A DNA stretch of 64,000 nt from Carpediemonas membranifera BICM (taxonomy: Eukaryota; Protista; Fornicata): positions 939,782 through 1,003,781 of the forward strand of contig JAHDYR010000038.1 in NCBI GenBank assembly GCA_019828565.1, in the 5' to 3' direction. The position numbers were made by a program, and so were the translations under genes. Shown in pieces: positions 1-63,049 of the stretch; within the stretch, counting starts at the first letter, position 1, and the number at the start of each line of letters is the position of its first letter. The notes below the pieces were generated by a model. That model ran no database searches. It was not told where the DNA came from and saw only the letters and a list, made by a program, of their open reading frames with translations.

Positions 1-158
1 GGCCGCGCCCACCAACAAGGCCGTCCACTATCACGTGCTCAAGAACACCCCCTCCCAACACCAGGACGTCCTCCAGGACGTCGTTTCTGCTGTCATCCTT
101 TCTCATTGAGCAGTTTAAGAACGAGAACAAGTCGCCACCGAACTGAGCGCTGGAATCG

Positions 159-1694
159 ATGAGCAGTGCTAGTTCCTCCCCATCAGCCATCAAAGAAGCC
201 CTTATCTCCGTATTCCGCGCCTCGCTAGTTGTAGCAGCCCGTATCTCCGGGGACGTACCATCCTTGCTCCAATGCGCCTACACCAGGCATTTTTGGCGAG
301 GAGATGCCCTCGTTCCACAACGCAGAGAGCACTACTGCACCAGCGAGCGCCCCTTCTCTCGAATCCCTCCCTCGCCACGCTCTCCAAGATCCCCCCGCTT
401 GAACCAACCGCACAAGTCCTCCTAGATCACGCCCGCTCGATCCTCGCAGACGGACCCCCGCTGTCCATGAACGTCGAGCTCTCGCCTGGCGATGAGCTCC
501 CGGCAACCATGCACACACACTGAACCAGGGCGCGGTGTGGGCGTGTCTTATGGGTGGAGGGGCCAACCCAGACCTCCAGGACCTCATCCGAAATGCTCTC
601 GCCCCCGAGGGCAAAGTGTCTCTGGTTCCTCTGCCGCAAGTTCTTCTTCACACTGAACGTCGCCGAGAAGGACGGCGAGTACTACCAATTCTCAAATGGC
701 AACACACACTACCATCACCGCATGTACATGGGCCGTCTATTCATGCTTCGTCCAGACAACCTCGCCATCTTCATTAGAGCCAGGATGCCCAGGGCCCTCG
801 AGGTCTACAGTTGCAATTTCAGCCATCTTACCAGGACACCTAAGGGTCTGTGGGCATGGAGCTTGGACTGGCACTGGAATGCGACCCGCCTCACCTTCAC
901 CAGCTGCCCTAATATCGCCGAGCTCGAGGCCAGTCTGCCCCCCTGGGAGAAGAACAGGATGGTGATCGATGTGTCGGAGCAGGCTTGTCGCAGGTTCATC
1001 CCTCACCCCAGTCGGTACTGTCATGGCTGGAAACGGTGCATGCTTCACAGTTCATGACGATCTGAGAAGATACGTCTTCCACCCAGTCGCTGTGCCCACT
1101 GGCTTCATCCCCTGATCGGATCATGTATGGAGGGGGGACAGTTATCCTCTCCGCGGGCGATCAGCAGGTAATCAGCGATTTCAACCGCCACTATAAGCTG
1201 GGACTTGGACGCGATAGATGTATACGGGGCTTCGAAAAGCTGCCGTTCAGGGTCGACCAGCTCATGGCAGACTGTCGCTGCAACGTCTTCCTCAGCGGCA
1301 GTCAACTCCTGTTCGCCGGTGTGGTTCCCCAACATATCGCCCAGTCTGGCCTACTGCCTGAATACCAGCAGCGCGAGAAATGCCTCACAGCAACGCCGAT
1401 TGCATTCCCTTTGAATGTAAAGGCGGTGTTGTTTTTCCCTGGCGGCTGATTTGGGTGTCTCCTGGTTGCACCCATATTTGCGAGGACGATTGTACGCTAG
1501 ATATGCCCTTTGAGGCAACAGCTGTCTATCAGACATATGAGCGTGTGTACGCATTATGCGACACAGAAGGGCAGTGGTATGATGTTGTGGGTGACTGCGA
1601 TGGCGTGGCTAAGGTGGTCAAGTGCAGCGTGTCTAGAGTGAGATATGCTCGCCTGAAAGTGCACTATTTCCTGCTCAACGAGGTGCCGGAATAA
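159..1694 (+). pseudogene. Frameshifted paralogue of the RCC1-like/beta-propeller family gene at 25380-26990
   Basis: Fragments in different frames align collinearly with the 536-aa ORF: DVPSLL/DVPSLL, WFLCRKFF/WFMSRKLF, YHHRMYMG/IYHRLYGG, TRLTFTSCPNIAELEASLPPW/TRLAFPLCPEITQAETSLPPW, KLGLG/QLGLG, LFAGVV/LFAGVV. Multiple frameshifts and stops. Confidence 0.8.
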
Positions 1695-2239
1695 ATCGAG
1701 TAAAATAATTAGACCTTGGAATCATGAATGCCGTGTGCGGTGGGTCCGTGGACGATAGAGAGTGGGCCTGCACGCGGCGTGGCACCAAGACGCCGAAGTC
1801 TAGCTGCCGAGATTTGTTGAAGCAGGCCACTGTTGATGCTTCAGCCGCAAGAGCAACAAAGAAGGCGCACGACACACGTAAGGTATATTTGACGGGAAAG
1901 GCAGTGGCCTGGCTTAACTCGCAGATGGAGAAATAAAAGATTCAGAGTCAATGGATATGTTTACAGCTTCATTCATTCCATCTATCGTCAGGGGTATCCA
2001 GATCGGACAGAGAGATGGGTCTTTTTCAGACTCTGCATCCCCGCTTCGTGCAGGATGCGGTTCGCGTGCCTGACGGTCATGGGGGACTACCCCAGAGCGA
2101 ATCAAGGTCCTTGGACATCCGGATAAGACCAGCCCACATCAATATGGGCTGTAGGTTACGTTTCTGCTGTCTCTAGATGCGCAGTGATCTCACTTACCAC
2201 CGAACATTTCTTTTAGAATTTCGTTCTGAAGAAACCGAT

Positions 2240-3169
2240 ATGAGCTCTGGGGTGAAGGATTCAGCAGGATACGCCAGCATGATGTTTGAAGCGCTACTGA
2301 GGATGATTCCGAAGCTGCAGGAGTACATCGCGAGGTACCGTGGTGACGGTGGCGAGATGGATCCGGCTATGCTTTTGCAAGCGATCCTACATCGTGTTCC
2401 TGATCTTCACCACGCTGATAAGAGACATATACGCGAGCTGTTGGCAGCTCGAAACTCAATCTGCCACAATCGCGATGTTTCCAGTGCTGCCGATTTTGCA
2501 TCCTTTGAGATGTCGGTCACATGCGTCATGTCGTTTGTGACGCAGAAGGTGGGCCGTGATGACGGCTTCAATGCCTTCATGGAGGCTCTGCACAACGAGG
2601 CGAACGGGGGGCCGACCAGGACGCGAGTTCACCCGCAAGCCCCTTCCCGCAGGGACTCCCAGCCTGTCAGGATAGTCGAGAAGCGGGTTGAGGTACCTGT
2701 TTACATGACTGCGCTGGGTCCTGATCCTGATAAGCCGAGGATGGTGGGAAAATGCCAGCAGTTTTCGCCACAGGGTGAGCATGCAGAGACTCAGACTGTG
2801 CGAGACCTAGAGGAGGCGTCTACTCAGACAGAGCTGTTGGTTGAGCCTGTTAGTACCCTGCGCACGCATGAATTGTCTCGACGCGTCGTCAAGACCGCGA
2901 TGTGCGATCTGCTTCGACAGAAGCTGAAGGAGAAGCCACCGACCGTATTCGCAGGGTCATGCGTTGTGTGTGGTGAGTCCGTGGACGATAGAGAGTGGGC
3001 CTGCACGCGGCGTGGCACCAAGACGCCGAAGTCTAGCTGCCGAGATTTGTTGAAGCAGGCCACTGTTGATGCTTCAGCCGCAAGAGCAACAAAGAAGGTG
3101 CACGACACACGTAAGGTATATTTGACGGGAAAGGCAGTGGCCTGGCTTAACTCGCAGATGGAGAAATAA
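2240..3169 (+). CDS. HEPN-domain (Swt1-like) putative RNase with a Cys-rich C-terminus, copy 1 (intact, 309 aa)
   Basis: D..LL..I...IRELLAARNSICH contains the HEPN R-N-x3-H motif in a helical domain. C-terminal CVVC...C...C. Confidence 0.7.
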   Translation: MSSGVKDSAGYASMMFEALLRMIPKLQEYIARYRGDGGEMDPAMLLQAILHRVPDLHHADKRHIRELLAARNSICHNRDVSSAADFASFEMSVTCVMSFVTQKVGRDDGFNAFMEALHNEANGGPTRTRVHPQAPSRRDSQPVRIVEKRVEVPVYMTALGPDPDKPRMVGKCQQFSPQGEHAETQTVRDLEEASTQTELLVEPVSTLRTHELSRRVVKTAMCDLLRQKLKEKPPTVFAGSCVVCGESVDDREWACTRRGTKTPKSSCRDLLKQATVDASAARATKKVHDTRKVYLTGKAVAWLNSQMEK

Positions 3170-3471
3170 AAAGATTCAGAGTCAATGGATATGTTTACAG
3201 CTTCATTCATTCCATCTATCGTCAGGGGTATCCAGATCGGACAGAGAGATGGGTCTTTTCAGACTCTGCATCCCCGCTTCGTGCAGGATGCGGTTCGCGT
3301 GCCTGACGGTCATGGGGGACTACCCCAGAGCGAATCAAGGTCCTTGGACATCCGGATAAGACCAGCCCACATCAATATGGGCTGTAGGTTACGTTTCTGC
3401 TGTCTCTAGATGCGCAGTGATCTCACTTACCACCGAACATTTCTTTAGAATTTCGTTCTGAAGAAACCGAT

Positions 3472-4400
3472 ATGAGCTCTGGGGTGAAGGATTCAGCAGG
3501 ATACGCCAGCATGATGTTTGAAGCGCTACTGAGGATGATTCCGAAGCTGCAGGAGTACATCGCGAGGTACCGTGGTGACGGTGGCGAGATGGATCCGGCT
3601 ATGCTTTTGCAAGCGATCCTACATCGTGTTCCTGATCTTCACCACGCTGATAAGAGACATATACGCGAGCTGTTGGCAGCTCGAAACTCAATCTGCCACA
3701 ATCGCGATGTTTCCAGTGCTGCCGATTTTGCATCCTTTGAGATGTCGGTCACATGCGTCATGTCGTTTGTGACGCAGAAGGTGGGCCGTGATGACGGCTT
3801 CAATGCCTTCATGGAGGCTCTGCACAACGAGGCGAACGGGGGCCGACCAGGACGCGAGTTCACCCGCAAGCCCCTTCCCGCAGGGACTCCCAGCCTGTCA
3901 GGATAGTCGAGAAGCGGGTTGAGGTACCTGTTTACATGACTGCGCTGGGTCCTGATCCTGATAAGCCGAGGATGGTGGGAAAATGCCAGCAGTTTTCGCC
4001 ACAGGGTGAGCATGCAGAGACTCAGACTGTGCGAGACCTAGAGGAGGCGTCTACTCAGACAGAGCTGTTGGTTGAGCCTGTTAGTACCCTGCGCACGCAT
4101 GAATTGTCTCGACGCGTCGTCAAGACCGCGATGTGCGATCTGCTTCGACAGAAGCTGAAGGAGAAGCCACCGACCGTATTCGCAGGGTCATGCGTTGTGT
4201 GTGGTGAGTCCGTGGACGATAGAGAGTGGGCCTGCACGCGGCGTGGCACCAAGACGCCGAAGTCTAGCTGCCGAGATTTGTTGAAGCAGGCCACTGTTGA
4301 TGCTTCAGCCGCAAGAGCAACAAAGAAGGCGCACGACACACGTAAGGTATATTTGACGGGAAAGGCAGTGGCCTGGCTTAACTCGAAGATGGAGAAATAA
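3472..4400 (+). CDS. HEPN protein copy 2 (frameshift in a G-run near 3840)
   Basis: Essentially identical to copy 1, with G5 in place of G6. Confidence 0.65.
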
Positions 4401-4702
4401 AAGATTCAGAGTCAATGGATATGTTTACAGCTTCATTCATTCCATCTATCGTCAGGGGTATCCAGATCGGACAGAGAGATGGGTCTTTTTCAGACTCTGC
4501 ATCCCCGCTTCGTGCAGGATGCGGTTCGCGTGCCTGACGGTCATGGGGGACTACCCCAGAGCGAATCAAGGTCCTTGGACATCCGGATAAGACCAGCCCA
4601 CATCAATATGGGCTGTAGGTTACGTTTCTGCTGTCTCTAGATGCGCAGTGATCTCACTTACCACCGAACATTTCTTTAGAATTTCGTTCTGAAGAAACCG
4701 AT

Positions 4703-5631
4703 ATGAGCTCTGGGGTGAAGGATTCAGCAGGATACGCCAGCATGATGTTTGAAGCGCTACTGAGGATGATTCCGAAGCTGCAGGAGTACATCGCGAGGTA
4801 CCGTGGTGACGGTGGCGAGATGGATCCGGCTATGCTTTTGCAAGCGATCCTACATCGTGTTCCTGATCTTCACCACGCTGATAAGAGACATATACGCGAG
4901 CTGTTGGCAGCTCGAAACTCAATCTGCCACAATCGCGATGTTTCCAGTGCTGCCGATTTTGCATCCTTTGAGATGTCGGTCACATGCGTCATGTCGTTTG
5001 TGACGCAGAAGGTGGGCCGTGATGACGGCTTCAATGCCTTCATGGAGGCTCTGCACAACGAGGCGAACGGGGGCCGACCAGGACGCGAGTTCACCCGCAA
5101 GCCCCTTCCCGCAGGGACTCCCAGCCTGTCAGGATAGTCGAGAAGCGGGTTGAGGTACCTGTTTACATGACTGCGCTGGGTCCTGATCCTGATAAGCCGA
5201 GGATGGTGGGAAAATGCCAGCAGTTTTCGCCACAGGGTGAGCATGCAGAGACTCAGACTGTGCGAGACCTAGAGGAGGCGTCTACTCAGACAGAGCTGTT
5301 GGTTGAGCCTGTTAGTACCCTGCGCACGCATGAATTGTCTCGACGCGTCGTCAAGACCGCGATGTGCGATCTGCTTCGACAGAAGCTGAAGGAGAAGCCA
5401 CCGACCGTATTCGCAGGGTCATGCGTTGTGTGTGGTGAGTCCGTGGACGATAGAGAGTGGGCCTGCACGCGGCGTGGCACCAAGACGCCGAAGTCTAGCT
5501 GCCGAGATTTGTTGAAGCAGGCCACTGTTGATGCTTCAGCCGCAAGAGCAACAAAGAAGGCGCACGACACACGTAAGGTATATTTGACGGGAAAGGCAGT
5601 GGCCTGGCTTAACTCGAAGATGGAGAAATAA
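4703..5631 (+). CDS. HEPN protein copy 3 (same G-run frameshift)
   Basis: Identical to copy 2. Confidence 0.65.
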
Positions 5632-5934
5632 AAGATTCAGAGTCAATGGATATGTTTACAGCTTCATTCATTCCATCTATCGTCAGGGGTATCCAGATCG
5701 GACAGAGAGATGGGTCTTTTTCAGACTCTGCATCCCCGCTTCGTGCAGGATGCGGTTCGCGTGCCTGACGGTCATGGGGGGACTACCCCAGAGCGAATCA
5801 AGGTCCTTGGACATCCGGATAAGACCAGCCCACATCAATATGGGCTGTAGGTTACGTTTCTGCTGTCTCTAGATGCGCAGTGATCTCACTTACCACCGAA
5901 CATTTCTTTAGAATTTCGTTCTGAAGAAACCGAT

Positions 5935-6865
5935 ATGAGCTCTGGGGTGAAGGATTCAGCAGGATACGCCAGCATGATGTTTGAAGCGCTACTGAGGATG
6001 ATTCCGAAGCTGCAGGAGTACATCGCGAGGTACCGTGGTGACGGTGGCGAGATGGATCCGGCTATGCTTTTGCAAGCGATCCTACATCGTGTTCCTGATC
6101 TTCACCACGCTGATAAGAGACATATACGCGAGCTGTTGGCAGCTCGAAACTCAATCTGCCACAATCGCGATGTTTCCAGTGCTGCCGATTTTGCATCCTT
6201 TGAGATGTCGGTCACATGCGTCATGTCGTTTGTGACGCAGAAGGTGGGCCGTGATGACGGCTTCAATGCCTTCATGGAGGCTCTGCACAACGAGGCGAAC
6301 GGGGGGCCGACCAGGACGCGAGTTCACCCGCAAGCCCCTTCCCGCAGGGACTCCCAGCCTGTCAGGATAGTCGAGAAGCGGGTTGAGGTACCTGTTTACA
6401 TGACTGCGCTGGGTCCTGATCCTGATAAGCCGAGGATGGTGGGAAAATGCCAGCAGTTTTCGCCACAGGGTGAGCATGCAGAGACTCAGACTGTGCGAGA
6501 CCTAGAGGAGGCGTCTACTCAGACAGAGCTGTTGGTTGAGCCTGTTAGTACCCCTGCGCACGGATGAATTGTCTCGACGCGTCGTCAAGACCGCGATGTG
6601 CGATCTGCTTCGACAGAAGCTGAAGGAGAAGCCACCGACCGTATTCGCAGGGTCATGCGTTGTGTGTGGTGAGTCCGTGGACGATAGAGAGTGGGCCTGC
6701 ACGCGGCGTGGCACCAAGACGCCGAAGTCTAGCTGCCGAGATTTGTTGAAGCAGGCCACTGTTGATGCTTCAGCCGCAAGAGCAACAAAGAAGGCGCACG
6801 ACACACGTAAGGTATATTTGACGGGAAAGGCAGTGGCCTGGCTTAACTCGAAGATGGAGAAATAA
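5935..6865 (+). CDS. HEPN protein copy 4 (frameshift in a C-run near 6552)
   Basis: ORFs 5935-6567 and 6536-6865 together rebuild the protein. Confidence 0.65.
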
Positions 6866-7492
6866 AAGATTCAGAGTCAATGGATATGTTTACACCTCTA
6901 TGCCACGACTTATGGGAAATCCGCCCTTATTAAGCTTCCTACAGGGAATATAGGCCATTTTGGAGGTATGAGCGACCGGGAGGGGGGAATGGGGGGCATT
7001 TATGGTATGGCTGGCCTCTACTCGGGCAGACTATTATAACGAGGCTCAGATCAGACCTCTACGGCCGCCTTACGAGGAGAAAAGAGCCAAGCAGCGCGCT
7101 AGCGGCCCATGGCCGCAGCAGAGCCCAGCCAAGCTCAGCTATAGGGTCACCTGAGACCCCGAATGACGTGCTGATCAGGTCGACTCCCATCTATTGACTT
7201 GGTAATTGCAGAGGGCGTCTGAACGCGATGTCCTAATAACCGACTTGGTCGGAGCGGTTCGGCGATGACTCCGTTGTATTCCACACCTTCTTTTAATGCC
7301 GAAACATGCAGTCCTTTAGAGTCAACGCGCGTCCTGTCCGTCAGGCGAAGGGCATTCAGCAGAGGCATTGCTGCGGTCTGCAGACCGCCCTAGCGCTTCA
7401 GGATGGCCAACTGCATGATCTGGACTCATGTCTATCAAATCCATTTTGATCACATCAAACATGTGTCAAATCCGGCAAATCGATTTTGCGAT

Positions 7493-7566
7493 AAAAAGGG
7501 GCAGAGGGGAGGAAGCGACCCATAAGGCGTACTTATGGACCATTTCCTCCCCCCTGCCCGTTTTTT
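7493..7566. repeat. Imperfect ~34-bp inverted repeat (hairpin, 5-nt loop)
   Basis: AAAAAGGGGCAGAGGGGAGGAAGCGACCCATAAG-gcgta-CTTATGGACCATTTCCTCCCCCCTGCCCGTTTTTT. Confidence 0.85.
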
Positions 7567-7799: not shown

Positions 7800-9128
7800 G
7801 TATGACCGCGCGTCCTGATTGTCACGATCCGAATGCTTGTGATCCCAGGATCGGGACGCATGCTCCTCGGATGTAGCGCTCTCAGAGCCCTCGGGCTGCT
7901 CAGCGACGAAGGCCTACACATATATAAGCCGCAGACGCCCTCGCAGGCGACTGACGGCGACGACGATATCGCGCTCGACCACCCGTACCTCGCTTGTGCA
8001 GTGGAGGACGAAGGCAGTGACCAGGTCAGCCTCATCAACATCCCAGACTCCGAGATAACTGGCGAGATAAGAACTCTAGCGGAGAAATACGCGCAGATAT
8101 TCGACCCACACCTCCCGGAGAGCAACGGTCTGAAGCCTATGACCATAGAGCTGACTGAGGACACCACAGTTCGAGTGGGCCCGCGCCCCTTGAACGCTCA
8201 GAAGAGGCATCTAGTGGAAGAGGAGGTGGCAAGACTGGAGAAGGAGGAGATAGTGCGACCGAGTGTCGGACCGTTTGCCTCCCCAGTCGTAGTAGTGTCG
8301 GGTGGACACAAGGGGTCTGACAAGATCCGATTATGCATAGACTATAAGAGTCTGAACGCTATCACAGTGAAGGACCACTACCCACTGCCGAACATCCAGG
8401 AGTTCGTGCGAGAGGCCGCAGGGTGCAAGTACTACGCGACACTTGACTTGCGTCAAGGGTACTACCAGCTCTCCATGGCGGAGGAGGACGTACATAAGAC
8501 AGCGTTCATCACCCCGGACAACTACATGGAGTTCTTGCGCTGCCCGTTCGGGCTAACCAATGCCCCATCCCGCTTCCAGCGGGAGATGGACAGGGTGTAT
8601 GCCCCACTGCTACACAAGGGGACCTCAGTATACATCGACGATATCTTCGTTTACGCTCGTTCGAAGGAAGAGTTCTTAGAGATCCTTGAGAGGGTCTTCC
8701 AGAGAACTGACGAATTCAACTTGCGACTCAAGGCGCCGAAATGCACGATAGGGGCAGCCGAAGCTGAGGTCGTGGGGTACATACTGGACGCGCAAGGGCA
8801 ACGACTAGCCCCATCGCGTATCGAGGCAGTGCTAGACATGCCACCGCCGACCAACTACAAGGCCTTAGAGCGGACGCTAGGCTCCCTTAACTACGTGTCG
8901 CGCTTTGTGGACGACTCCAGCAGAGTGCTGACCCCCCTGAATCGCCTGAGGAAGGACTCGCAGCCTGGACAACCGGTCAGTTGGACGAGTGAGCACCAGC
9001 AGGCGTTCGACAATTTCAAGCTGTGTCGCTAGCGTTCCCTGACCCTTCCAAGAAGTGGGAGTTGCACACAGACGCCAGCGCTACCGGGTTTGGAGGTGTA
9101 CTTTACCAACAGCAGAGCGAGGACATAC
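7800..9128 (+). mobile_element. Ty3/Gypsy pol fragment (protease tail, RT, start of RNase H), truncated at both ends
   Basis: RLCIDYKSLN, LDLRQGYYQ, CPFGLTNAPSRFQR and YIDD. After a frameshift, LHTDASATGFGGVLYQ. Confidence 0.95.
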
Positions 9129-10206
9129 TGTTAGAATGGCCAGTTAATCCGGGGATATACGGAGGATAAACGCAAATTCCTTATTCGTGCTTCAGGGCGT
9201 TCGAAGTCCTAAGAAGCAGCTGAAATGATAGATGCGAGTGCATTAATGACATATCCATGCTTGATGTAACATGTGCGAGATTGGTGGTCGAGCAAATTGC
9301 CTCTCGCATTTTAAGGTCGAAGGCAAAAGTGGTCGTACGACCAAGTGGCCTTGTCAGCAAAGTCTGTGTGTTCTAAAGAGTATCCTCTGTTGTTTTTATG
9401 CGTCAACTCCTTCTCAGTCGCCGGGAACTAATAACTGAATCAACCAATCAAAGAATGAAGCTGTCCCCCAGAAAGCAGGCCATACTACGGTGGTATATAG
9501 TCAGTATACATCATCGGAGTATGTTCGGTTTTCTGGGGGACAGATTCAATCTTCTGTATCTCAAAATTTGCAATTTTTTATCGGCGATAAGATGGAATCA
9601 GAAGACTTGGCTCAGAGCTCAAGTGCACTTAGCTCCATAGAGCTGAGATCGGCAATTGGCATGATCCACCGCCGCAGAAGGTGCCCAAAGAGGCGCTGAC
9701 GTTGAGCGGTCGATCATGGCCGTTTAACACATCAACGGGGGCCTCATCCCATGCAGTATCCATAACTTTTTACCATTTTCTTCTAGCTGCACTGGTTGGC
9801 AAATGAGCATTTTGTGTCGCCTTCATCATGGCAATATTCGAGATCAAATCCAGATTTGCTTTTTTTGTGCACAAGGAGCACAACAGCAAATTCGCAAGTA
9901 ATGCAGATGAAAATCAGATGAATCTTAATCAGGCACTCTCATACACACACTGCTTTAGTTTCGGAGCCAACGTCCATAAACTGAAGGAGTTCTGAACATT
10001 GTTTCACCAATTGTGTGAAACTGGTGAAATTGTGAAATAGTGTTGAAACGGCCAGAGAAGAAGAAGGAACCCCGGCAGCGCAGTTGTAGCTGCTCTTATA
10101 GAGCTATAGCAACAGCCAAATTGTCTGATTTATCTCACAGACCGTTGCGCATGTACCTGCCTAGTTTTTGTACAAAAATCTTGTTTTTTTAAACTCTACA
10201 GAAATC

Positions 10207-12747
10207 ATGGTTGCTCATATTGTGTTCGAGAGCCACATCGGTACAATATATGATGACCAGCCACGCTCAGTTGAGCGCATGAATTACCTTCTTGGCTGTA
10301 CCTACTTCGCCATGGTCGGAATTGGCCTCAACTCCGCCAGAACAAGACCTCAGCGCGAGCAATTCTGCCAGCTCGTCCGCGAGATGGAGGAGGCGGACCT
10401 GATCTCCCAGCGCATTCACGACGCAAGGTTCTTCCGCCCTCCAGCAGACTCCCGTCCCTTCCAACGTGCCGCAACCGCACACGGAAATCAACACCCTCCT
10501 CACCCTGTCTTCGTACGGGACGATTACCGCACCCACGCCATCCAGGAGCGTGCTGTGCAGGACAACAACGACTCAGAGGAGCGCTCCGCCAACTTTTCTG
10601 AGATCATGGAGCTCACATCGATCCTGATGTACGTCCGCAATGGCTTCAACTCGACCCAAGAGCTCTTTAAGCTCATCAACAACATCTCCCGCCGGCTTGG
10701 AAAGCCGATCTCGAAGAACAAGACCGCGGAGGTGCTCATTAAGGACCTTGGAATTGACATGACCAGAATATCTGGTGTCTCAGAGGCCCTCACTGAGGAG
10801 GAGCGCGCCTTCGTCAAGCATCTCGTGCCGTGCAGGTCGGTCTCAGGCAATACAACATGGCGGCGTACCATGTCCGGCACGCAGTCGCGACTTGAGTTCA
10901 CGAACCGTTTGACTGTAGCCGACGGAGCCGAGCCGACTCCGTTTTTCGACCACGACCTCGTCGCCGACCACACTTGGGAGCGACCGACGCTCACCCTCCA
11001 CTATGACAGCGAATCCGACGCTGTCCAGCACTACCAGTCCCTCAAAGGCAGTGTAGGTATCGCCCATCTGGGCAAGCGACTGAACAGCTCGACCTGGGAC
11101 AAGGTGGAAACGGTGTGGTTCGATGGCGTGTGCTATCTGCAGCAGGCAGTGCTTCACCCGGAGTGGCTCGAGTCTGACCAGACGAACTTCGAGCGTTGCT
11201 CTCGTGCCCTTCAGGACCCAGGCCATGTCGAGTTCCAACCACTAAAACTACTCCTGTGGCTCGACGCATGGAAGGGACATACCGCAACGTTCAAGATCCG
11301 CATCTACGACCCGTCAGGCTTCACGTTCCCTAACCGCATCACTCCCCCCTTCCGACTCGTTGAGTGTCTTTGCCGGTGAGAAGGAGCTGACGGAGGAGGG
11401 AAACCTTCAACTCGTTGAGGAAGAAGTCGAGCGGATCTATCAAGCCCTCATACCGATCAGAGGAACTGACCAGGTCACCACCTTCGACCAAGTCATCGTC
11501 ATGGGCGATCACGCGGCCATCAGGAAGCTGTCATCCGGCATCGAGGGTAATGGAGGGCACTATCCCCAGCCCTTCAACAGCATCCGTCGAGACCACAAGG
11601 CGCTGCACCCCATTCCGGCGCACTCTCGGGTCACCTTGCATGATTTGCTCGAGCAGAAGGCAGCGTTCCACGCCGTGCAGGCCGACCCCGACCGTGTGCA
11701 GGACCCGAAAGAGGAGTATGGCAACTTCTCCGACAAGAGGGCCATCTTCGAGAACCGGCCAGAGCCCCGAGTCATCCACACGGAGCGAGTTGTCTTTTGT
11801 CCTCCGATCATGCACAACTCGCACCGCCTGCTCGAGCAAGTGGCACGGCTATGCGCCAGCTTCCCCGCTGATCGGAACGCAACTGCCGTAGACAAGCGCA
11901 AGCTCCAGCGCATGTCATCCAACCGCAGTATTGACCGCACTGTCGGGTGCAACGAGCAGTCTGCTGCCAGAGTTCGCATGGCGAACACCACGAACGAGGA
12001 TTACGAGGCTCTTCCTGAGTCCGTCCAAGATATTGTGCGACTCATTGGCTATCTCCAGGCTCTTTACTACTCAACCGAGCCTGTCACCGACAGCAAAGTC
12101 GCATTCCACTTCTTGGCCGCGTCCATGTGCCACCTGTTCCACGTCATGCTCAGTCTGCAGGCACACCAGACAAAGCTGGCGTTGCTCCCTCCTGGGCAAG
12201 CAGACAAGGCGGAGAAGCCATGTGCCCAGACACTCTATGTCAACAGCAGGCTCACTGCCCAGCCTCTTCTTCACGATCATCTCCGAATTCCTCTTTTTTT
12301 ACCTCCTCGAGGAGTTCTTTGAGAGAGAGTTCATCAAGAACCAGGAGGTCCGAGCCGAGTTGCACAGGTCGGCCATGATCGAGAAGCTGTGTTTGACCGA
12401 GCAGACCACCCTCATCTGCACGTTCTTAACGGGTATTCGCTCGTTCGGTCGCCAGGACTACTCAGTCCCCCCCGCTGAACAGGCTTCGTCGTGTCCGAGT
12501 CCACCAATGCTGCAGACAAGCTCGCTCATGGTTCGCCATTCGCAGCCACATGGAGGCAAGGCACCAATTCCATGCCACGGCGGCGGTGGTGCGCCTCTTC
12601 CAGGAGCTCGTTGACGAGATGTGGCAGTACGTCAACGATTATACGGCTTTGGCATGGGACGAAGAGTCTGGGGTGATGGTTTGCGAGTTGGCAGACATGG
12701 GTGAGGAGCTTGTTTGCTGCATTTGCGGTCATGCACGCGCTGAGTAG
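10207..12747 (+). CDS. RAG1/Transib-like DDE transposase (~845 aa after repairing three homopolymer frameshifts near 11345, 12295 and 12470)
   Basis: Candidate catalytic D in LWLDAW (11263), D in VMGDHAAIRKLSSGIEGNGGHY (11507; compare RAG1 [20 protein letters not shown]), PIMH, LYVNSRLTAQP (compare RAG1 NYFHKTLAHVP), and E in LLEEFFE (~12309-12323). Confidence 0.65.
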
Positions 12748-12871
12748 TGAGTAAAGGAGTTTTATTGGTCAGTACATCCCATTTGGTGTGTTTCCCCCAA
12801 CTACCAAATTTTTTTTTCAACATTGGTAGTTTCACAATTTTCACATTACGTCACTTGTTTGGTGAAAAACA

Positions 12872-13797
12872 ATGGAAACGCCACTTCCGACATGGCTGAC
12901 GATGAATTTATCGCAACACAAGGCCTATATTCAATATGTCAAGCTTTCAGACAAGTCTGAGCTCTTGCCGTCTGTCAGGGCCTTCTTCAACAGAGATCTG
13001 GCGACTTCGAACCTCGACTGTCTGAACTACTCATTCGTCATGTATGTCAGACCCACTACACTTCTTGTTAACACAGTCTCATCGCAATTCGTGGGGTTGA
13101 GATGGACAACATCAAGGCTGCATGCCTTCTCTTCCGCGAGTCGTACAGGGAGGGGCAGACCCTGAGCGGACAACTGCACCAGGAGCGGTTTGTCATCGGC
13201 TTACGGACAGCCGTCTCCTGCAGAGGTCTTGGGTTCGCGAGGGTGCTTCTTAGCATAGCATCTGCCGAAGAACTCGTCCGACTGCAGTGCGACAAGCGAC
13301 TCCAGGACATGTATGCGTCCTTTGGCCTCAAGGAGTCATCGGACCCGTCGCAGGTCGAGCAGCTGGTGGACACGGGGGGCAACCCACTTGCCATTGTCAC
13401 GATGGAGGGCACGATGGGTCCCAACAAGTGGACCAACCTCGGCAAGAGCCTGACAGAGTGCTGTGGGATGATAATGCAAGGCTCTACGTTGATCCGCGTG
13501 ACCAACCATGGTAATAGACTTGATCAGCACGCTCATGGGATGCCTGCTTCCGACAAGAGGAGTGTTGACTCGTTCGTGGAACGCACCCGTGTGTCCGTGC
13601 GCCGTGAACGTGCGGCAAAACGGCCTAACGTCACCCGAATCAGGCAGAAGTTGATGATTATCCGCCATTACAACCTTCGTTCTTTCACGCTGGTCAAAGA
13701 GATCAAGGAAACGAGGACCGAGATGCGTAAGGAGAAGAAAGCCAACTTCTGGGACAGTGAATGGAATATTTCCGTTGAGGATGACGAAGAAGTGTAA
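12872..13797 (+). CDS. GNAT-family acetyltransferase; intron 13042-13076
   Basis: A 35-nt GTATGT...TTAACACAG intron joins the two ORFs in frame. Motif A CRGLGFARVLL is followed by VRLQC...MYASFGL. Confidence 0.7.
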
Positions 13798-13821
13798 ATG
13801 AAATGAAAATAAAACAAGAAT

Positions 13822-14526
13822 TTATAGCTCCTGTGCCGAACACTCTAAGTAGTAATTCATGATGGCTTGGTATACCTTGCGACGCAGCACATCACGCGAT
13901 TCAGCCTCAGCACGTTCCGCATTCCGCTTGGCAATGACAGAAGTGAGCTGACTGAGTGTCTTAGCCTCCTTCTTCAGAACTCTGGTGGGTCTGGCGAAGA
14001 TGAGATCCGCGTCGCGGTCACGGCAAGGCTTGCTCAGGACGAGCTTGACGTCATCGACCGTCACACCGCACGATGAAGCAGCGAAGGCATGGACCTTAGC
14101 CCGGTAGGCGATGGGAATGCGGTGAAAGGCATCATCCATCTCGCGGACAGTCGCGATGAGTGGGTCGTCCGTGTCCAGCTCATCTGTCTGGGCGTCAAGA
14201 CTGAGGAGAGCCTTGAAGCGGTGACGCTTGTCCTCATCACCGCCTCCCTGCCACTTGCGGCTGATCTCTTCGACCGACTGGAGATTGCCGTAGAGCTTGT
14301 CCTTCTTCAAGGAGGCTACTTTCATCTTAGGGACCTCGGCGGCGAACTTCTGGCTGAAGTCGACAACCCATCCGTTTGCGCGGGTAATATCGTCATTATT
14401 AAGGAGGAAATTGCTGATAAAGGTCTGAACGATCTCGATGGGCGTCTTGTGAGCTTTTCGGGCTGTTTTCGTGGACTTGTTGGACTTGCTCTGGCTCTTT
14501 TGCTGCGCTTTCTTGCCAAGAGCCAT
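13822..14526 (-). CDS. Hypothetical protein with a Lys-rich N-terminus (may start at 14585 if a 20-nt intron is real)
   Basis: 234-aa ORF with protein-like composition, convergent with the GNAT gene. No recognised motif. Confidence 0.65.
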   Translation of the reverse strand: MALGKKAQQKSQSKSNKSTKTARKAHKTPIEIVQTFISNFLLNNDDITRANGWVVDFSQKFAAEVPKMKVASLKKDKLYGNLQSVEEISRKWQGGGDEDKRHRFKALLSLDAQTDELDTDDPLIATVREMDDAFHRIPIAYRAKVHAFAASSCGVTVDDVKLVLSKPCRDRDADLIFARPTRVLKKEAKTLSQLTSVIAKRNAERAEAESRDVLRRKVYQAIMNYYLECSAQEL

Positions 14527-14910
14527 TCTCCTCTCCTTTTTGAGCTTCAGTGGCCTGTATATTGCCTTGTTTACTTCTTTGCCATCGTTGTTTCCTTAAA
14601 ATGCGTGTGAAAATGTGAAATGAACTGTGACTCTCGACATTGCTGCGCAGCTATGGTATTCCAACGGCACAGAACGGGTTTATAGCATGCATATGATCCA
14701 TTCTGGTGCCTTTATCCTCTATAACCAACATCAGTCCATCAAAATGAATCTTGCAACAGAATACTCATCCACACGCATCGAGAACGAAAAAGAAGCATAT
14801 AACCAACATCAACAACCTAATAGAAGGCTGCATGCAAGCGTAGAGCTCTCCTAGTCAATTCTTCATTTTCACCACCATCGATCTCCACGTCAGGATGAAA
14901 CCGTGCGCCC

Positions 14911-14961
14911 AAAAGCTCAGAGATGCCGTTATAGATGATATAACGACGTCTCTGAGCTTTT
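14911..14961. repeat. 23-bp inverted repeat, 5-nt loop, 2 mismatches
   Basis: AAAAGCTCAGAGATGCCGTTATA-gatga-TATAACGACGTCTCTGAGCTTTT. Confidence 0.9.
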
Positions 14962-15001
14962 CAGCGATTTCAGTTTCTGGCCATGGATAAGCTACAAATC
15001 C

Positions 15002-15267
15002 TGTCAATGTTGTCCTCAGAGGACACTGAAAAATTTAATCTGTGTCCTCTGAGGACCAAATTGACAAAAATCGAAAAATGGAGCGAGGAGATGTCCATCG
15101 AAAAACGGCCAAAACAGCGCAGGTGCAGAATGAGCTGAAAAATCGGCCAAGGGGTAGCTCTTGGGTCTTTATGGCTGATCGGAGGTATTTACATGACAGC
15201 TGGCAATATTTATTGAGATAAAACGTATTTCATTTTTCGAGAAAGTCTTCTGAGGACCAAATTGACA
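15002..15267. repeat. 25-bp inverted repeat (15002-15026 / 15042-15066) plus a third arm copy at 15245-15267
   Basis: TGTCAATGTTGTCCTCAGAGGACAC-15 nt-GTGTCCTCTGAGGACCAAATTGACA. The third copy, GTCTTCTGAGGACCAAATTGACA, abuts the ATG at 15268. Confidence 0.9.
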
Positions 15268-17435
15268 ATGGTTAACGAAGACATCATCTCTCTCGGCAAA
15301 CTGAAGGAGACAATGCTTGCTCCTGACGATTCTGGTATGTCACTTTCATTTTCACGGTCCTATTTACACAGATGATTCATTCCGTGCATACGACGCCCTT
15401 TCGTCCACAAAGAGCCGTATAACCTGGCTGCAAGATCACGGCATCGTCTCTGATGACCCTCTGTTCTTCGTTTGCGTCCGTCTGATCAGCATTCGTACGA
15501 TCAACGTTGTTTTCGGGTTCCCGTTGAAGCGCACTTTAAGCCAGCACGTTCACGACTATGGAGTTGCCAAACTACGCGCGATATGTGACGCAACTAACCG
15601 CAACTACCTCTGCGAGGTCGACTTTGACTCTCCCGACACAATTGAGGCATTCCGACGGAAGTTTTGTGACCACTTCACCGCCAAATCTGTTCATAAGGCT
15701 CTAGTCGGCGTCGACTCGCTCCCCTGTTGAGAAGCAGGTTGAGATTTACCGCGCATTCCACCTTGTGTTGCGCCACAAGGACTCGAAGAAACTCGATTCT
15801 CGTGTTCCGGCAGGCCAATTTGGCCAGTTTATCGCCCACGCCCAGCTCAGCAAGAAGCTGTCCTTCGCTGGCTCAGAGAAGCTGGCCGAGGAGTTGGCTA
15901 AGATCGGTTCGCTCGATCCGTCAGCTCCTCTGAAGAGGAAGATCGCTCGTCTTGAGAAGGAGCTCGCCTCATCGACTGCTGCTCTGATGAAGGTCCAAGA
16001 GGAGTTAGTCCGGGCCCAGGATCGCTCAGCAGCAGCCACCAAGCCTTCTTCCGTCGTTGCTGCCCCTCAGCCGCTTCCGGTTGTCGACGCAGAGTCCACG
16101 ACACACGATGAATTTTCCGACACTGACGAGTCCGAGTCCGATGGCCACTCTGAACCGGCCGCCATGCAGGGTGACGGCGTTCCTTTGCCACAGTCTGATC
16201 AAGACGTCGACGTAGAGTCCGATGTGGACGACACAGACACCGTTGGTTCTCTCCTTCAGCAGCTAGACGACACCATTGCAGGCCTTGATGATGTCCCTGA
16301 GTCTGTGCGCTTGTTGGAGCAGTACGAGCCCTTGATAAAACGGCTTGCTGAGGAGAGGGAGGCGCTTGAACAGGCTAACAGAGAGTCTGAGGAGTCCCAG
16401 AAGAGACTTGAAGCTGAGTTAGGTCAGCAGAAGGCCGAGGATCAGGCGATCCATCAGTTTACTCAAGCAGAGTTGGCACGGGCGAGTGAGGCTGGGCTTG
16501 AAGCGCTCGCCGATGAACTCGAGGACAACTGGGCTGAGCTTGTCAGGCGCGCCGAGGAGGCAACAGTGGAGCTTGACCGCTACGTTCCTCTCGCTGCCTT
16601 GATGGTACTGTTCCAGAGGAACAATGTGACTGGAGCCTTATGGACTCGGATCAATAGCACCATGATGAGGTACGGGGGCCAGAAGTTCATAACGGTCCCA
16701 CCCCTCGACCTCGGTCTGTCGCCAGAGATGAAGGCTATCATCAAACAGCACTCTCCGACGCCTGCCAATGTTCCCCCTATGCAGATATACTTACGGAGCG
16801 ACGTTGATAGGCAGAAGTACATCGACGTGGAGTACGACAAGGTAGGCGAGCGAGTTCTCAAAGATCGTAAGAGTTGGTGGAAGATTGCAGTCAACCCGGA
16901 TGGATTGTGCATCGGCTACTGCCTGCAGAAGGTTGAGAATGGCGAGTTCGACAAGAAGTTTGCGGCAGAGGAAGTGGCAGCAGTGAGGGAGGAGGTGCGC
17001 GCCTGGGGATTCTCCGATGCTGGCGAGAGGCTGAGGCTTGAGACGTCTAACGTGTTCGTGCCCACCCTGATGTTCGACGATGCCACTGATTGGTACAGCA
17101 ACTTTGGTGTCATGGCCTGGTCAGCTCTGAAGAGCAAGACTGTAGTCGTTATCTGGGTCAAGATGTTGACGTACCATGACAAGTATATTGTGCGGATGCA
17201 TTTGACGGAAGTTTATGAGTCCGGCATGGTCCGGCGTGGATCTGATGAAGATGTGGCTGCGGCGCAAGCTATTGTGGTCGTCAAGGATGAGCATGCGACG
17301 CTATTTGTCCGCAAACGTTCAAAGGGTGGTAAGAGAAAGGCTCATACGACTTATATCAAGCGCAAGGCAGTCGATAAGGATCGCGAAAAGAGAGTTGTTG
17401 ATGCCGAGGACGTTAAGCGTGGAGTTCCCGAGTAA
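15268..17435 (+). CDS. Coiled-coil/acidic protein with a C-terminal OTU-like cysteine protease; intron 15335-15371, C-run frameshift near 15722
   Basis: VNPDGLCIGYCL (OTU D-G-x-C), WYSNFGVMAWSALKSKTVVVI and KDEHATLF (candidate catalytic His). A 37-nt GTATGT...TTTACACAG intron. Confidence 0.65.
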
Positions 17436-17461
17436 AAAAAGAGATGTTTTGACATTTTAAT

Positions 17462-18271
17462 TCATTTCTTCCGCTTCTTGAGTGCCGGATACTGCTCCAG
17501 GAACCTTGTGAGATAGTTCGGATGAGAAATGGGCAGACTCGGGAACCTAGCAATGGTTAAGACCTCACCCGCATCAAAGAAGATCTCGCCGTAACTGATA
17601 CGAAGAAACTCTTCGGCCTGAATGACGTTCGTCGACTCAACCGCAAGGACTGGAAGGTCCTTGAGCAAACGGTTGGTGAACTGGCAGTTGGTGTCACTCT
17701 CACTGTGGTTGATGAGGTGTACACCAATGCCTTCACCTTCGCCGGCGTCGACGTGAAGGTTGCTAGCGTCGAATGAAATGCTGTGTAAAGGCATAATGAA
17801 CAATGAACAAACACCATGTTGCTGTTATTCGCGTGGTAGTCCTCGTCGGACACAATCCTACCGGCGTAAATGCCGAGGAGCTTTCCGGGCTCAATTGCGG
17901 CAGTTGCAATGAGGCCTCTACCCACGTCCGTGTGGTCGGGAGCCAGACAAGGCTGCACCTCAACGGCAATGGAGGGGTGGGTCAGCCGGGTGGATAACCA
18001 ACTCGGGGGTTCGAGGGGAGGAAGGTCCTTCTCGGCCTCCTTAAGCTCCCCTGATCGACTCCTCGGGAGTGTTTGGGTAGATCGCGGCGACCAGATCCGG
18101 ATGCAGTGCCTGAGTATGCACAACGGATTCAATGATGGAATCTTCGCTTGAGGAATCCTCCTGAGAATCATTTGAAGGCGCAGACGGCGGCGTCTTGCCC
18201 GCAGTGGACGTAATGGGTATTCTGATACCCCCAGGCTGCGGCTTTGGTGGGAGCGCCTTTCTTCTCGCCAT
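17462..18271 (-). CDS. SET-domain methyltransferase; intron 17781-17812, G-run frameshift near 18050
   Basis: GRGLIATAAIEPGKLLGIYAG, INHS..NC and EEFLRISYG..FF. A 32-nt GTTTGT...TTTACACAG intron restores the frame. Confidence 0.8.
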
Positions 18272-18360
18272 CTGATTTTTTTTGCAAACGGACACGCGGT
18301 ATTTCTCGGGATTGATGGGGCCGTCTCACACCGTAAAGGACACACATACAATATCTTATC

Positions 18361-20060
18361 TGTAACACCAGAATGCTTGCTTATTGTGGTCCATATCCTT
18401 CTGTTCAGCGCCCGGAAGTCTATCACGAATCGAGTCTTGTCCCTCCCCTTGGGGACCAAGAAGGCCGGGGAGCCGTGAGGCGATGCCGACGGCTCGATGA
18501 ATTGGTGAGCCCGGAGCTCTTCGACGTGGGCATTCATGGCCGGAACCTTACTGTCCGGGATGAACATGGGGCGCGCCACCACCGGCGAGGGGTCGTCCAC
18601 CTGTGACGCCAGGTCATATGGCATCAGACGGCTCGGCTGGCCCACACGGTCGGCGAAGACTCGCTGGTACTGTCCCAACAGCCGGTCCTGCTCGGCTCGG
18701 TTCCCGTCCGAGAGGCAGTAAGCCTGGAGGGTGGGGGTCTGCTCCGGCACGAGCTCGGCCTCCTCGGCGGTGACCTCGCCCTCGCGGTGGTCGGTCTCCA
18801 GGGCCGGCAAGATCCCCAGCTCGACCATCGTGGGGTAGCCTATGATGATGTCGTACCCCGACCTCAGCAAGTAAGTCGTTACCCTGGTAGTGCACCCGCG
18901 GGGCGTGAACGCGGAGGGGTCAAACGTCAGGCTCAGGACGGTCGCCTGGCTGACCCTAAGCTTCCCGGCGGGGGTCTTGACCTCAACCTCCCGCCCTGTC
19001 ACTACTCGTGATCCCGCATCCAGAGCTAGGTCTGGGTCTACAAAGTCCGCGGAGGCGCCGCAGTCGAACAAGATCGACTTGACCGTCCGGCGGGTGAGGC
19101 GGCCGGAGACGATCGGCAACATCTTACGCAGCGTCCCCTCTGGGTACAGGGAGTGAAGCGACACGCACTTGCGGTCATTTACACGACCACAGAACTTGGC
19201 CAGGTGGCCGGTGCGTCCGCATGTCTCGCACTTGGCACGGCCCTTGTCGCACTTGGGGGCAATATGACCCTGAGCCCCACAGTTGTAGCACGTGGGCTGC
19301 CACTTCTGCTGCCACTTTTCCTGCTCCTCAGGCTCCCGCTCCGCATTGCGCGGCGAGGTGGGGGCCCCTGCGGTGGTGTTATGGCGCCGGTCGGAGTATG
19401 GGCGGTCACGCCGGTGGCCCCGACGGCCCGTAAATGATGTCCCAGCCCTTTCTCGATCGCGCCTCTCGGGTCGTTCGCGCAGGTTACGCGGCTCATCGGC
19501 GCAGAATCGCTTAACGAACGCCTGCGACTCGTGAACATCGCTGGCGATCACTAGAACCGTAGACATGGTCTCTTCGAGCGTCATGCCCTCCGTGCGCTCC
19601 TTAAGCGTGGACCAGGTGTTTCTGGCGCCCGGTCCGCGGAATGCGCGAAGATACAGCTCTCGTATCGTTCCTGCGGCGACGGATGCCATGCTCAACAGCG
19701 GTAGTAGCTGCCTGAAGTGGGAATTCACGGCCAGCACCTCGTTGGGGGAGAAGCCACGTGCCTCCTTGCGGAGAAGGTCGAGCTGGTTCTCCTCGCGGCG
19801 AGGACGAAGGGCGGCGCGGAGTTTCGCCTCCACGAGCAACGTACACTTTGTAGGCGGCGAGAAACTTCACGAGGGCATTAAAAGCTGGAGTCTACAAATA
19901 GGGTGCGTCCATTGAGTGTAAGTATCGATACTGTGGTCTCTAGGACGAAGAAGGTTTTAATGAACAAGGCTAACTTCCACTGAGACTGCTGAGGACTATC
20001 TTCCTCTGCATCTTCCGCTGTCAATAAATAGATACAAGAAATATATGGTCAGTGACCACA
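18361..20060 (-). mobile_element. Truncated Ty3/Gypsy element: 5' LTR, gag with two CCHC knuckles, protease, start of RT
   Basis: CYNCGAQGHIAPKC, CETCGRTGHLAKFC, LFDCGAS, SPAFLVPKG..RFVIDFRALN. Confidence 0.92.
19932..20060 (-). repeat. Putative 129-bp 5' LTR
   Basis: Termini TGTGGTC...GACCACA (7-bp inverted ends), 19 nt upstream of the gag ATG at 19912. Confidence 0.75.
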
Positions 20061-51244: not shown

Positions 51245-54200
51245 TTAGTCCAGAACATCCCAACTCGCGTTTTCAAGGGGCGCCCATCTTCGAAAATGGA
51301 CCCGACCCAGCATCATATTTATCGAACGGCGAGGGGGACAGACATGGGAACGCGTGCTAGACAAATACATAACAATCGCGTGTTGGGCGGGGTGGTGTCT
51401 GACACTTGGGTCCAATAAATGGTCCGTCGGGGGGATGGGAAGCCGGAGAATTATTGAAGCTCTATCTCTGCCTCCCCTTCTGAATCGCGTTACAAGACAG
51501 AGTCTAGCGTCGTCTGACGGAGCTGCTTCAGCCCGAATGGCAGACGCTTGTTCGGCACGGCGACGTAAAAGAGCAAAAAAGAACAGCCCCGCGATAGGTC
51601 GACTCTCCAGGTCTGTCTCGCCCACCTGCTGCACTACAGGGACTCCTTTGTCGTCAATACCGAAGTCGTAGACAGCTGGTACCATCTTGTCGTCCACCTT
51701 GATCGTGAAGGAGGGGGCGACGCGGATCGTCCCCGTGACCCTGCCGAGCGTCCAGAGTGCCAGCATGATGACCTCCATGTTAGTGTAGCTTGTGTTCTCG
51801 ATGCCCTTGGCCAAGTTCTCGAGATTGGTCGACCCGTCTGGTCCCGTCGAGGGGCTTCGGAAGGTGTGGAAAGCACATGATCCGTCCATCGGCACCGAGA
51901 AGACAAGCGCATTGCAGCGCTGTGCCAGCGTGTCTAGCCTCCCCAGGGTCGACTTACGCGGCTTGTTAAGGCCGGTCAGGTCCTTAACCTGCGTGACGGT
52001 GTCTCCGGCAACTCGCTTCAGGACGCGACTGCTCGGAGGGACGAAGTCGTGCTTGGGCTGCACTGAGGGCAATCTTGTGATGTTAGGCTCCTCCTTACGT
52101 GCGACCACAGGCTCGGCTTGCTCGACATCGGGGGGCGAATGGGTTGTTTTGGGCTCCCCCTGAGATGATGTCGCGGACTCGGCCTACGTGGATGATGAGG
52201 TACTGCGACCGTTGTCTGTGTCGCGTGCAGAGTCGAGCTGCTCTATTGAGGCAATTGAGCAGCCGCGGAGGCAGTCGGCGACCATCGACTTGGCCCCCCT
52301 AAAGAGTGTGCACTGCAGACCCGCGAGTACAAACGAGGCCTGCTTCGCAGAGAAGATGTCTGTGATCAGCGTCCGGAAGGCCCGGTCGATGACGCCGTTG
52401 GAGGCCAACATCAGGGGTTTGACGTCAGCGCCGGCGTGCTGCCTGGCCTTGTCCCTGGAGCGTCTGGCGAAGCTGCACTCCTCTAGGCGATGCACCACTG
52501 TGAGATCGAAGTGCTCTGGCTTCAGTGGGGTCGCGTTTCGCCGCAGGGTGAAGTCGATCCGGGGTGTCCCGTAGACTGTGTGCGGCTCGTAGTTCAGCAC
52601 CTCGGCTGACTTCGGCAGCAGTGATAGGAAGACGCGGTTGAGCTGGTCGTGCATCTTAGTCCGAGCCGACATCGAGTTTCTGCAGTTGATGTGGTGGTCG
52701 TAGGACGTGACACAGTTGCATCTTGAGCAAAACAGCTTGGCCTCGCCCGCGAAGTCAGCGTAGCGGCTCTGGATCGCTGCGCGGAAGACTGCGTTGTCCA
52801 TCTCGGTCAGCTTGGACGTTGGATAGGCGCTGAGCCAGGCTCCGGAACCATGCTCCTGCAGTTGCTTAACGACGCTTCGCACCCTCTCCGGCATCTTGCG
52901 GATCTTCAGCCGGTAGTGGTCCTCGCCTATACGGCTCAGAACAGCTGTCAGGTCGGCCTGCTTGAGGCCGATGCCCGACTCGTCAAGCCGCGCGAGGCTT
53001 ATCGCGTGCACGTCCCGAACGTCAGGGATGCCGAGCCCGCCATGGCGGATCGGCAGGGGGATGACATGGCACGCGACATCAACCGAAAGGCCACACGCCT
53101 CAGCGATCAGGCGGTTCTTGGCGGCGTCGAAGTTCTGGAGGATGTGCGCGGCCTTGCGTCCGACGAACGCGTTGTGCTCTCTCGGCATCCGGAGCGCGTG
53201 CACTAACCTGGGCATGATGCAGTCGCGGATCAGGGTGACGGCTGCCTGGAGAGGGAGGTTACGCAGTAGGTCGCGTATCGCGTCCAGCTGCTTCTGGAAA
53301 AGCCCGTTCAGCTTCATGCAGCGCTCGTCAGCGTCGGCGCCCGGGAAGTGACCCATGATATTCGTCGTCGTAAAGGTCGTGAGGCCATGATCCGGGTGGA
53401 CGATCGACTCTTTCCCGGCCAGCCAGAAGCTCTTCGCCTCCTTGTGCAGCATGGCGAACCGATGGGATTGTCACGTTGTGTTAGCTGTCCCAATCAGTTC
53501 TTTTATGATTGGTCAATGATCATCAAAGTCAATTTAAAGTTAGTTCATCGTTTCCCTTCGGTGTTCCTGTCCCCTGCCCGTCACAGGGATCTGTCGGTAT
53601 CCGAGTCAGCCAACGTGATATCGTCCATATACATGGTCTCACTTGGCACACGCGACCCGAACTCGTTCTTTGCCTGCGTCACGGGTGTGACCAACACCAG
53701 ACAGAAGAGGAGTGGCGAGAGGGGTCGCCCTGGCGGACGCCCTGCTTAGCCTCAAGCACGTGGTCACCGAATGCTCTGAGATCTTCGTCGTAGAGATGAA
53801 GCATATACGACTTGAGACTGGCGTCGGCGTTGAGTGCCTCGATCGTGGCCCGGATGGCTGGTCTAGAAACGCTGTTGAAGGCGTTCTCCAGGTCGACAGA
53901 GAGCACATCCTTGCCCTGCTCGATGGCCTCTTGGATCCGAATTGCGGTGCGGGTGGACCCCTCGGGGAGGAAGGCCGCCTGATTCGGGCCCGTGGCCTGG
54001 GCTAGCTGCGGGATAAGCTGTCTGGCGACGATGCCGTTCAGCATTCGCAGCAGCGCCGAGCATACGACTATGGGTCGCCACGTGTTGTCACCCTTCGGGA
54101 GCAGTGAGAGTCGACCGGTGAGGCAGACTCTTGGAATCCGCTCCGGCGACTTCAGCCAGACGTTAATAGGGCTGCAATCGTCTTGATGGTTGCGGGGTCG

Positions 54201-55650: not shown

Positions 55651-55659
55651 GTTCACCCC

Positions 55660-63030: not shown

Positions 63031-63049
63031 GGGAGTATGGGGGTCGGCC

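Follow-up and report, generated by a model that had tools for sequence, protein, structure and literature searches.

The DNA analysed here, a stretch of 64,000 nt from a contig of Carpediemonas membranifera (the window), contains four open reading frames (ORFs) at 10207–12747, together with all the motifs that the original prediction had quoted when it joined these ORFs at three homopolymer runs into one RAG1/Transib-like transposase. The four ORFs are one gene, as had been claimed. An unbroken frame of 846 aa is found in two other copies (L007 and L017), and the sites of the breaks read in frame in two sister subfamilies, B and C (48–57% identity). Compared with L007 and L017, the window copy carries three extra bases (a T at 11369 and one base each in the T run at 12294 and the C run at 12467). 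A first join at the C6 run at 11344 is ruled out, and the extra T at 11369 takes its place. The gene and its breaks are located as follows:

10207..12747, + strand: transposase gene of 845–846 aa, with three frame breaks in the assembled copy of the window
11369..11369, + strand: frame break 1, an extra T (TTT here, TT in 18 of 18 other copies scored)
12294..12300, + strand: frame break 2, a T7 run (T6 in intact copies)
12467..12473, + strand: frame break 3, a C7 run (copies range from C5 to C7, of which C6 keeps the frame)

Among the 19 assembled copies, the run at 12294 is T7 in 15, T8 in one and T6 in three, which puts 16 of the 19 out of frame here. Taken at face value, these counts would mean a real frameshift, with most copies non-autonomous and dependent on a few intact ones for mobilisation in trans, or a programmed shift. 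Against this, both alleles of a SNP 8 nt from the run occur with T6 and with T7, 64 of the 66 indels within the gene are located inside single-base runs, and the published assembly was built from R9.4 nanopore and Illumina reads (PMC8516963). Because of the mixture of SNP alleles, the indels in runs and the in-frame reading of subfamilies B and C, T7 is very likely an assembly error; a real frameshift is quite unlikely, and the frame breaks of the window copy are probably nanopore errors. As for a programmed shift, the frame requires +1 and the slippery heptamer gives −1, which rules out ribosomal frameshifting by −1 at T7. Between subfamilies, silent differences are seen in about half of the conserved codons. 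All searches and folds were run on the naturally intact copy L007, with no artificial repair of the frame.

The gene is located inside a repeat that has over 20 long matches, 99–100% identical, in the C. membranifera genome, and the original prediction had overlooked the element with terminal inverted repeats (TIRs) around it. The terminal 13-mer is found as inverted pairs about 12.1 kb apart, and the left TIR matches the right TIR of other copies perfectly over 48 bp. The target site duplication (TSD) is exactly 2 bp, of varied sequence, in 11 of the 11 copies with both ends, and no target sequence preference is evident among the insertions. A TSD of 4–5 bp was rejected, as only 2 bp fits the flanks, and a domesticated host gene is ruled out by the many copies, the TIRs and the TSDs. 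The gene is the transposase of a recently active cut-and-paste DNA transposon of 12.1 kb, which is present in the window in truncated form:

7833..9123, + strand: host site, where the element interrupts a pol of Ty3/gypsy type (RT, RNase H; RVT_1, E 1e-30)
9122..9123, + strand: left target-site dinucleotide GA, its right-hand partner missing in the truncated window copy
9124..9171, + strand: left TIR, 48 bp, starting with CATACTG (sharp boundary in 16 copies with 13 different flanks)
9124..18401, + strand: portion of the element in the window, with the right ~2.85 kb and the right TIR missing
18402..19839, − strand: gypsy-type gag-protease-RT fragment adjoining the broken end of the element (by eye)

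The window copy itself is immobile because its right TIR is missing. The CATACTG tip is also found in subfamilies B and C (57% and 48% protein identity), and a complete relative of 11.6 kb in GCA_002919055.1 (L037:2171-13799) has the same tip and a 2-bp TSD. Like the window copy, this relative interrupts a gypsy RNase H gene, and deleting the element plus 2 nt restores the reading frame of the host gypsy element.

A shorter element of 3.75 kb, whose TIRs start with CATACTGTTAAAA and which matches no transposase, was found at G000 C1:930990-934753, C6:1344467-1348226 and C68:649306-653070, on C47 and C61, and at L019:5634; it is probably a non-autonomous partner of subfamily C. Of seven pairs with this type of TIR, five have a 2-bp TSD. 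One copy of the 3.75-kb element is inserted within the GNAT-like cargo gene described below, where the insertion site coincides with an AGCAT direct repeat (window 13251-13260). This repeat occurs in the GNAT-like ORF of all copies, and its reading as a single-copy excision footprint was rejected on that ground. On a contig of the zinc-intact sister group described below, CATACTG is located about 1 kb upstream of the gene, directly after telomere-like repeats (L041:34-40); it is possibly the same tip, a single case with about a 6% probability of arising by chance. At G000 C67:745000-794000 (L012-L014, L020) there are five head-to-tail copies with a period of 11.2 kb; the four fetched share an identical left flank and contain many indels, as a tandem array or an assembly artefact. 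Long imperfect hairpins are found in the non-coding gaps of the window (7493-7565, 9451-9553, 14906-14966 and 15002-15066), and similar ones in L037 and L040. Elsewhere, the window contains about four tandemly repeated units of 1.23 kb, all of which include an ORF of up to 330 aa (1733-6961), and a cluster of retroelement fragments (52184-64000) with a non-LTR RT that has a C-terminal nuclease-like part and at least two gypsy-type elements.

Besides the transposase gene, the element carries several cargo ORFs:

13102..13797, + strand: ORF with GNAT-like motifs by eye, which may start further upstream (no Pfam match)
13822..14526, − strand: ORF of 234 aa with no assigned function
15317..17435, + strand: acidic/coiled-coil ORF(s) with no assigned function
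17782..18339, − strand: SET-domain-like ORF, frame-broken here (Pfam SET, E 0.017, below the cut-off)

For the GNAT-like ORF, the neighbouring gene in a relative is a GNAT (E 6.5e-9), but the pairwise match is weak (E 0.86). The right-hand cargo, absent from the window, is located at L021:174-1199 (+) and L021:1224-2444 (−). In L021, a caspase/CHAT-like His-Cys ORF (by eye) is conserved in the GCA_002919055.1 element (E 3e-23), and a PHD-like ORF matches its counterpart there at E 4e-4; the domain scan of the PHD-like cargo ORF gave E 0.003. Caspase-like and PHD-like genes thus recur in the GCA_002919055.1 element, where OTU-like and SET-like ORFs are seen as well (L037, all four by eye), and the single cargo identities are weak. 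At the sequence level, no kelch match was found in any cargo ORF scanned, the one PHD-like ORF being that at E 0.003, and no RAG2-like gene was found among these ORFs.

AlphaFold2 modelled the whole transposase with a pLDDT of 81 and its core with 88; the core was cut from 8 residues before D353 to 7 after E705 (345-712). The best PDB matches of the full model are RAG1 (Foldseek E 1e-8), followed by BbRAG1L and HzTransib, and no match was found in a viral structure library. The core aligns with mouse RAG1 at 592..969 (Z 16.4, 320 residues, rmsd 5.0), with HzTransib (6pqx) at 117..442 (Z 14.2), with BbRAG1L at 693..1070 (Z 14.2) and with the P element at 222..538 (Z 12.7). The catalytic register was read from the ends of the aligned ranges, assuming no gap beside these ends. 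The Asp of the WLDAW motif and a downstream Glu had been proposed by eye as D600-like and E962-like, and in the predicted core D353 falls on D600 and E705 on E962. The proposed comparison by AlphaFold and Foldseek agrees, with a RAG1-like fold and the first Asp and last Glu in register with both RAG1 and HzTransib (residue numbers from PMC4914335 and 10.64898/2026.08.26.747230). These residues and the neighbouring features are listed below:

10849..11112, + strand: ferredoxin/RRM/ACT-like insertion that precedes the RNase H domain, aa 215-302 (VIA-align Z 5-7, middling, fold only)
11263..11265, + strand: D353, first catalytic Asp (RAG1 D600, HzTransib D125), invariant in 20/20, register from range ends
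11378..11380, + strand: E391, candidate second residue of the DEDE tetrad, invariant in 20/20, equivalence judged from spacing
11507..11509, + strand: D434, second catalytic Asp (presumptive RAG1 D708), invariant, at a strand end before a helix
11813..11815, + strand: H536 of an invariant MH motif
12321..12323, + strand: E705, catalytic Glu (RAG1 E962, HzTransib E435), invariant, register from range ends

The whole DEDE tetrad (D353, E391, D434 and E705) is invariant in 20/20 sequences, and its outer two residues are in structural register. From its invariance and its position at the end of a strand, D434 would correspond to D708 of RAG1 and D224 of HzTransib, and we take the counterpart of E391 in RAG1 to be E662. 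The domain at aa 215-302 appears to be absent from RAG1.

In RAG1, the ZnB site is formed by C727, C730, H937 and H942, and mutations of these ligands destabilise the protein and constitute one class of SCID/Omenn mutations (PMC4914335). The corresponding regions of the window protein, and a conserved tail, are:

11567..11578, + strand: degenerate C(2)C zinc half-site, Q454-P-F-N457
12242..12259, + strand: degenerate H(3-4)H zinc half-site, N679 to A684
12502..12726, + strand: C-terminal tail with H765, C767, C837 and C839 (conservation alone)

Here the ZnB columns read Q454, N457, N679 and A684, that is, 0/4 ligands. The claim that both halves of the site are substituted together therefore stands, as does the replacement of the two His by N and A (N679 and A684); the register given for the CxxC half, PQPF, does not, and the half-site is QPFN, one residue later, because relatives read YPCPF and RCSFC. 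All five members of one C. membranifera clade (support 97/98) have 0/4 ligands. In subfamily B, the first Cys position is occupied by His, and a Cys is found one residue away. Two ligands are retained in most of the other relatives, one relative keeps one and P0015 keeps none, and a metagenomic sister group (P0021/31/32/33) keeps 4/4. From this series across relatives, we read the loss of zinc ligands in the sequences as real and stepwise, and probably repeated. It occurs in elements that have moved recently.

A rewired zinc site, in which C581, E583, H536, H539 or the C-terminal cluster would bind metal at or near ZnB, seems unlikely. It keeps some probability because the C581/E583 motif marks the ligand-poor group, where both residues are invariant, and is absent from the zinc-intact group. 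However, C581 and E583 also occur in relatives with two of the ligands left, and H536 occupies the “ALH” position of RAG1, which is no ZnB ligand. The H765/C767/C837/C839 cluster may be a separate zinc site of the tail, and its spacing differs from that of the CCGHC tail of RAG1L (PMC10462144).

Using exhaustive phmmer, we collected 21 proteins, including further Carpediemonas families, proteins from GCA_002919055.1 and metagenome proteins; word-seeded homology searches returned Carpediemonas proteins only, and the only match of the core in a set of 5.8 billion is the C. membranifera protein J8273_3986. The same genome encodes at least three more distant families (P0003, P0004, P0009 and P0013; 28–33% identity), annotated as hypothetical proteins. 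The weakest phmmer match, P0021, led to the zinc-intact sister group, whose profile match (98%, E 1e-13) is collinear across all motifs; a genome search with the alignment of this group gave one locus, nearly identical to one already in the set. No named family was matched when Pfam and PDB were searched by sequence and by HMM, using both single proteins and profiles. Searches of the C. membranifera genome for the families PF12940, PF18759 and PF02992 found none; the PF02992 search is weak alone since its control was also silent. In the literature searched, no description of this element family was found, and the main text of the C. membranifera genome paper contains no mention of transposons of this kind.

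With RAG1 and RAG1L (ProtoRAG, AanRAGL), the family has the core fold in common: about 320 residues align at Z 14-16, the counterparts of D600 and E962 are in register, and four acidic residues, all invariant, follow each other in the order DEDE. A PHD-like gene at the far end of the element, oriented towards the transposase, is a further shared feature. Unlike RAG1 and RAG1L, the element is without ZnB ligands and has a 2-bp instead of a 5-bp TSD, symmetric perfect TIRs of 48 bp that are not RSS-like and an inserted ferredoxin-like domain in its transposase; no RAG2-like gene was found in it, and the identity is 11–14%. The likeness to Transib (HzTransib) includes the fold (Z 14.2; 6pqx), D125 and E435 in register, and a terminal heptamer similar at 5 of 7 positions. 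In contrast to Transib, all subfamilies start with CAT instead of CAC (CACAATG-like heptamer), the TSD is 2 bp (11/11) instead of 5 bp, zinc ligands are missing, and a protein of 846 aa (about 480 in Transib) is encoded in a 12-kb multi-gene element. The P element resembles the family in its RNase H core with helical insertion (Z 12.7), but fewer residues are aligned (246 vs 320). The residues in register with D353 and E705 are presumably D230 and E531. P elements have 8-bp TSDs and a THAP domain, and neither was seen in the element.

Transib and RAG1 belong to the wider CMCT clade (CACTA-Mirage-Chapaev-Transib), which also includes EnSpm/CACTA, Mirage, Chapaev, Plavaka, ESTA and Lanisha, with C(2)C and H(3-4)H motifs, CA..TG ends and 2–5 bp TSDs as clade-wide traits (PMC12730594). 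The element has CA..TG termini and a TSD within 2–5 bp, C(2)C and H(3-4)H are retained in its relatives, and its match to predicted structures of Plavaka and CACTA is as good as that to RAG1. On the other side, both supposedly universal motifs are absent from the element, no HMM match to PF02992 or PF18759 was found, and the CATACTG tip is none of the quoted termini. Unlike EnSpm/CACTA, it has no CAC termini and no Transposase_21 (PF02992) match. The tie of the element to the clade runs through its relatives and the fold, and a counterpoint is that the P element also scores Z 12-13.

We conclude, with a probability of roughly 0.7, that the family is an offshoot of the CMCT clade that has lost the clade-defining zinc motifs and still transposes. 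It is filed as an offshoot and not as a member by definition because the zinc motifs are absent here and complete or partial in relatives. The original prediction of a zinc-less RAG1-like lineage is thus supported for the RAG1-like DDE fold and the concerted ligand loss, and not for the assignment to Transib/RAG1, given the 2-bp TSD, the CAT ends and the Plavaka and CACTA structures level with RAG1. Resemblance to RAG1 does not make the family Transib, because the motifs are CMCT-wide; ESTA was likewise recognised via HHpred matches to RAG1 (PMC12730594). RAG1, ProtoRAG and Transib were the only CMCT members appearing in the PDB searches. To our knowledge, they are also the only ones with solved structures, and would therefore top such a search for any CMCT member.

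That the family is instead a true deep-branching member of Transib/RAG1L whose TSD was shortened to 2 bp is doubtful. RAG1 is the top PDB match, above HzTransib, and is the best named match of the zinc-intact P0021 by the language-model features of the Atlas (0.92); the motifs read like RAG1/Transib by eye, CATACTG agrees with the RSS heptamer at 5 of 7 positions, and TSD length is labile in Transib, with exceptions to 5 bp (10.64898/2026.08.26.747230). However, the PDB searches showed no other CMCT family for comparison. Among Atlas structures, the Plavaka cluster is first and RAG1 second for the full model, and P0021 gives a tie of Plavaka (TM 0.52), CACTA (0.49) and RAG1 (0.48–0.49). The 2-bp TSD, the CAT start, the symmetric TIRs and the lack of a PF12940 match or of a RAG2-like gene among the ORFs scanned also speak against membership. 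Among protists, Aureococcus already provides an example of RAGL, accompanied by RAG2L and with a 5-bp TSD (PMC9435367). A divergent member of PlavakaB or EnSpm/Mirage, forming no separate lineage, is still less probable. Its appeal lies in the Plavaka cluster as top Atlas structure, and in the CATCA..TGATG termini and 2–3 bp TSDs of PlavakaB (PMC12730594), of which the TSD fits the element and the terminus does not: the tip is CATAC, neither CATCA nor CACTA. Moreover, no PF18759 or PF02992 match was found, and the known members retain the zinc motifs. On the favourable side, an FER motif follows the catalytic Glu region, as in EnSpm.

For the CMCT offshoot, a mechanism can be proposed. A transposase dimer would bind both 48-bp TIRs via the CATACTG tip, and D353, D434 and E705 would perform two-metal DDE cleavage, as the fold suggests. 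By analogy with RAG and Transib, a nick followed by a hairpin on the flank is the somewhat favoured route, and the fold alone leaves this route unfixed because the P element also matches. Joining of the ends to the target would follow, with a stagger of 2 nt. The helical insertion domain is likely held without zinc, by ordinary packing, and there is perhaps an even chance that the cargo modifies or reads host chromatin.

In summary, this analysis adds a test of the catalytic register, a zinc-ligand series including a zinc-intact sister group, and a check of the frame breaks. A bolder reading, which we consider unlikely, makes the family the deepest known branch on the Transib/RAG1 side, with no ZnB zinc, no RAG2 and a 2-bp stagger, and with a PHD reader and a SET writer of its own in the part that the PHD of RAG2 later took over; if true, neither the zinc site nor the 5-bp geometry seen in RAG would be indispensable. 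For the family as found, recently mobile elements have 0/4 ZnB ligands, though the motifs are stated to be universal in CMCT lineages (PMC12730594). Since relatives keep one, two or four ligands, this natural series makes the role of zinc testable, and it also lets the determinants of a 2-bp versus a 5-bp target stagger be tested. A lineage of cargo-rich DNA transposons is also added for metamonads.
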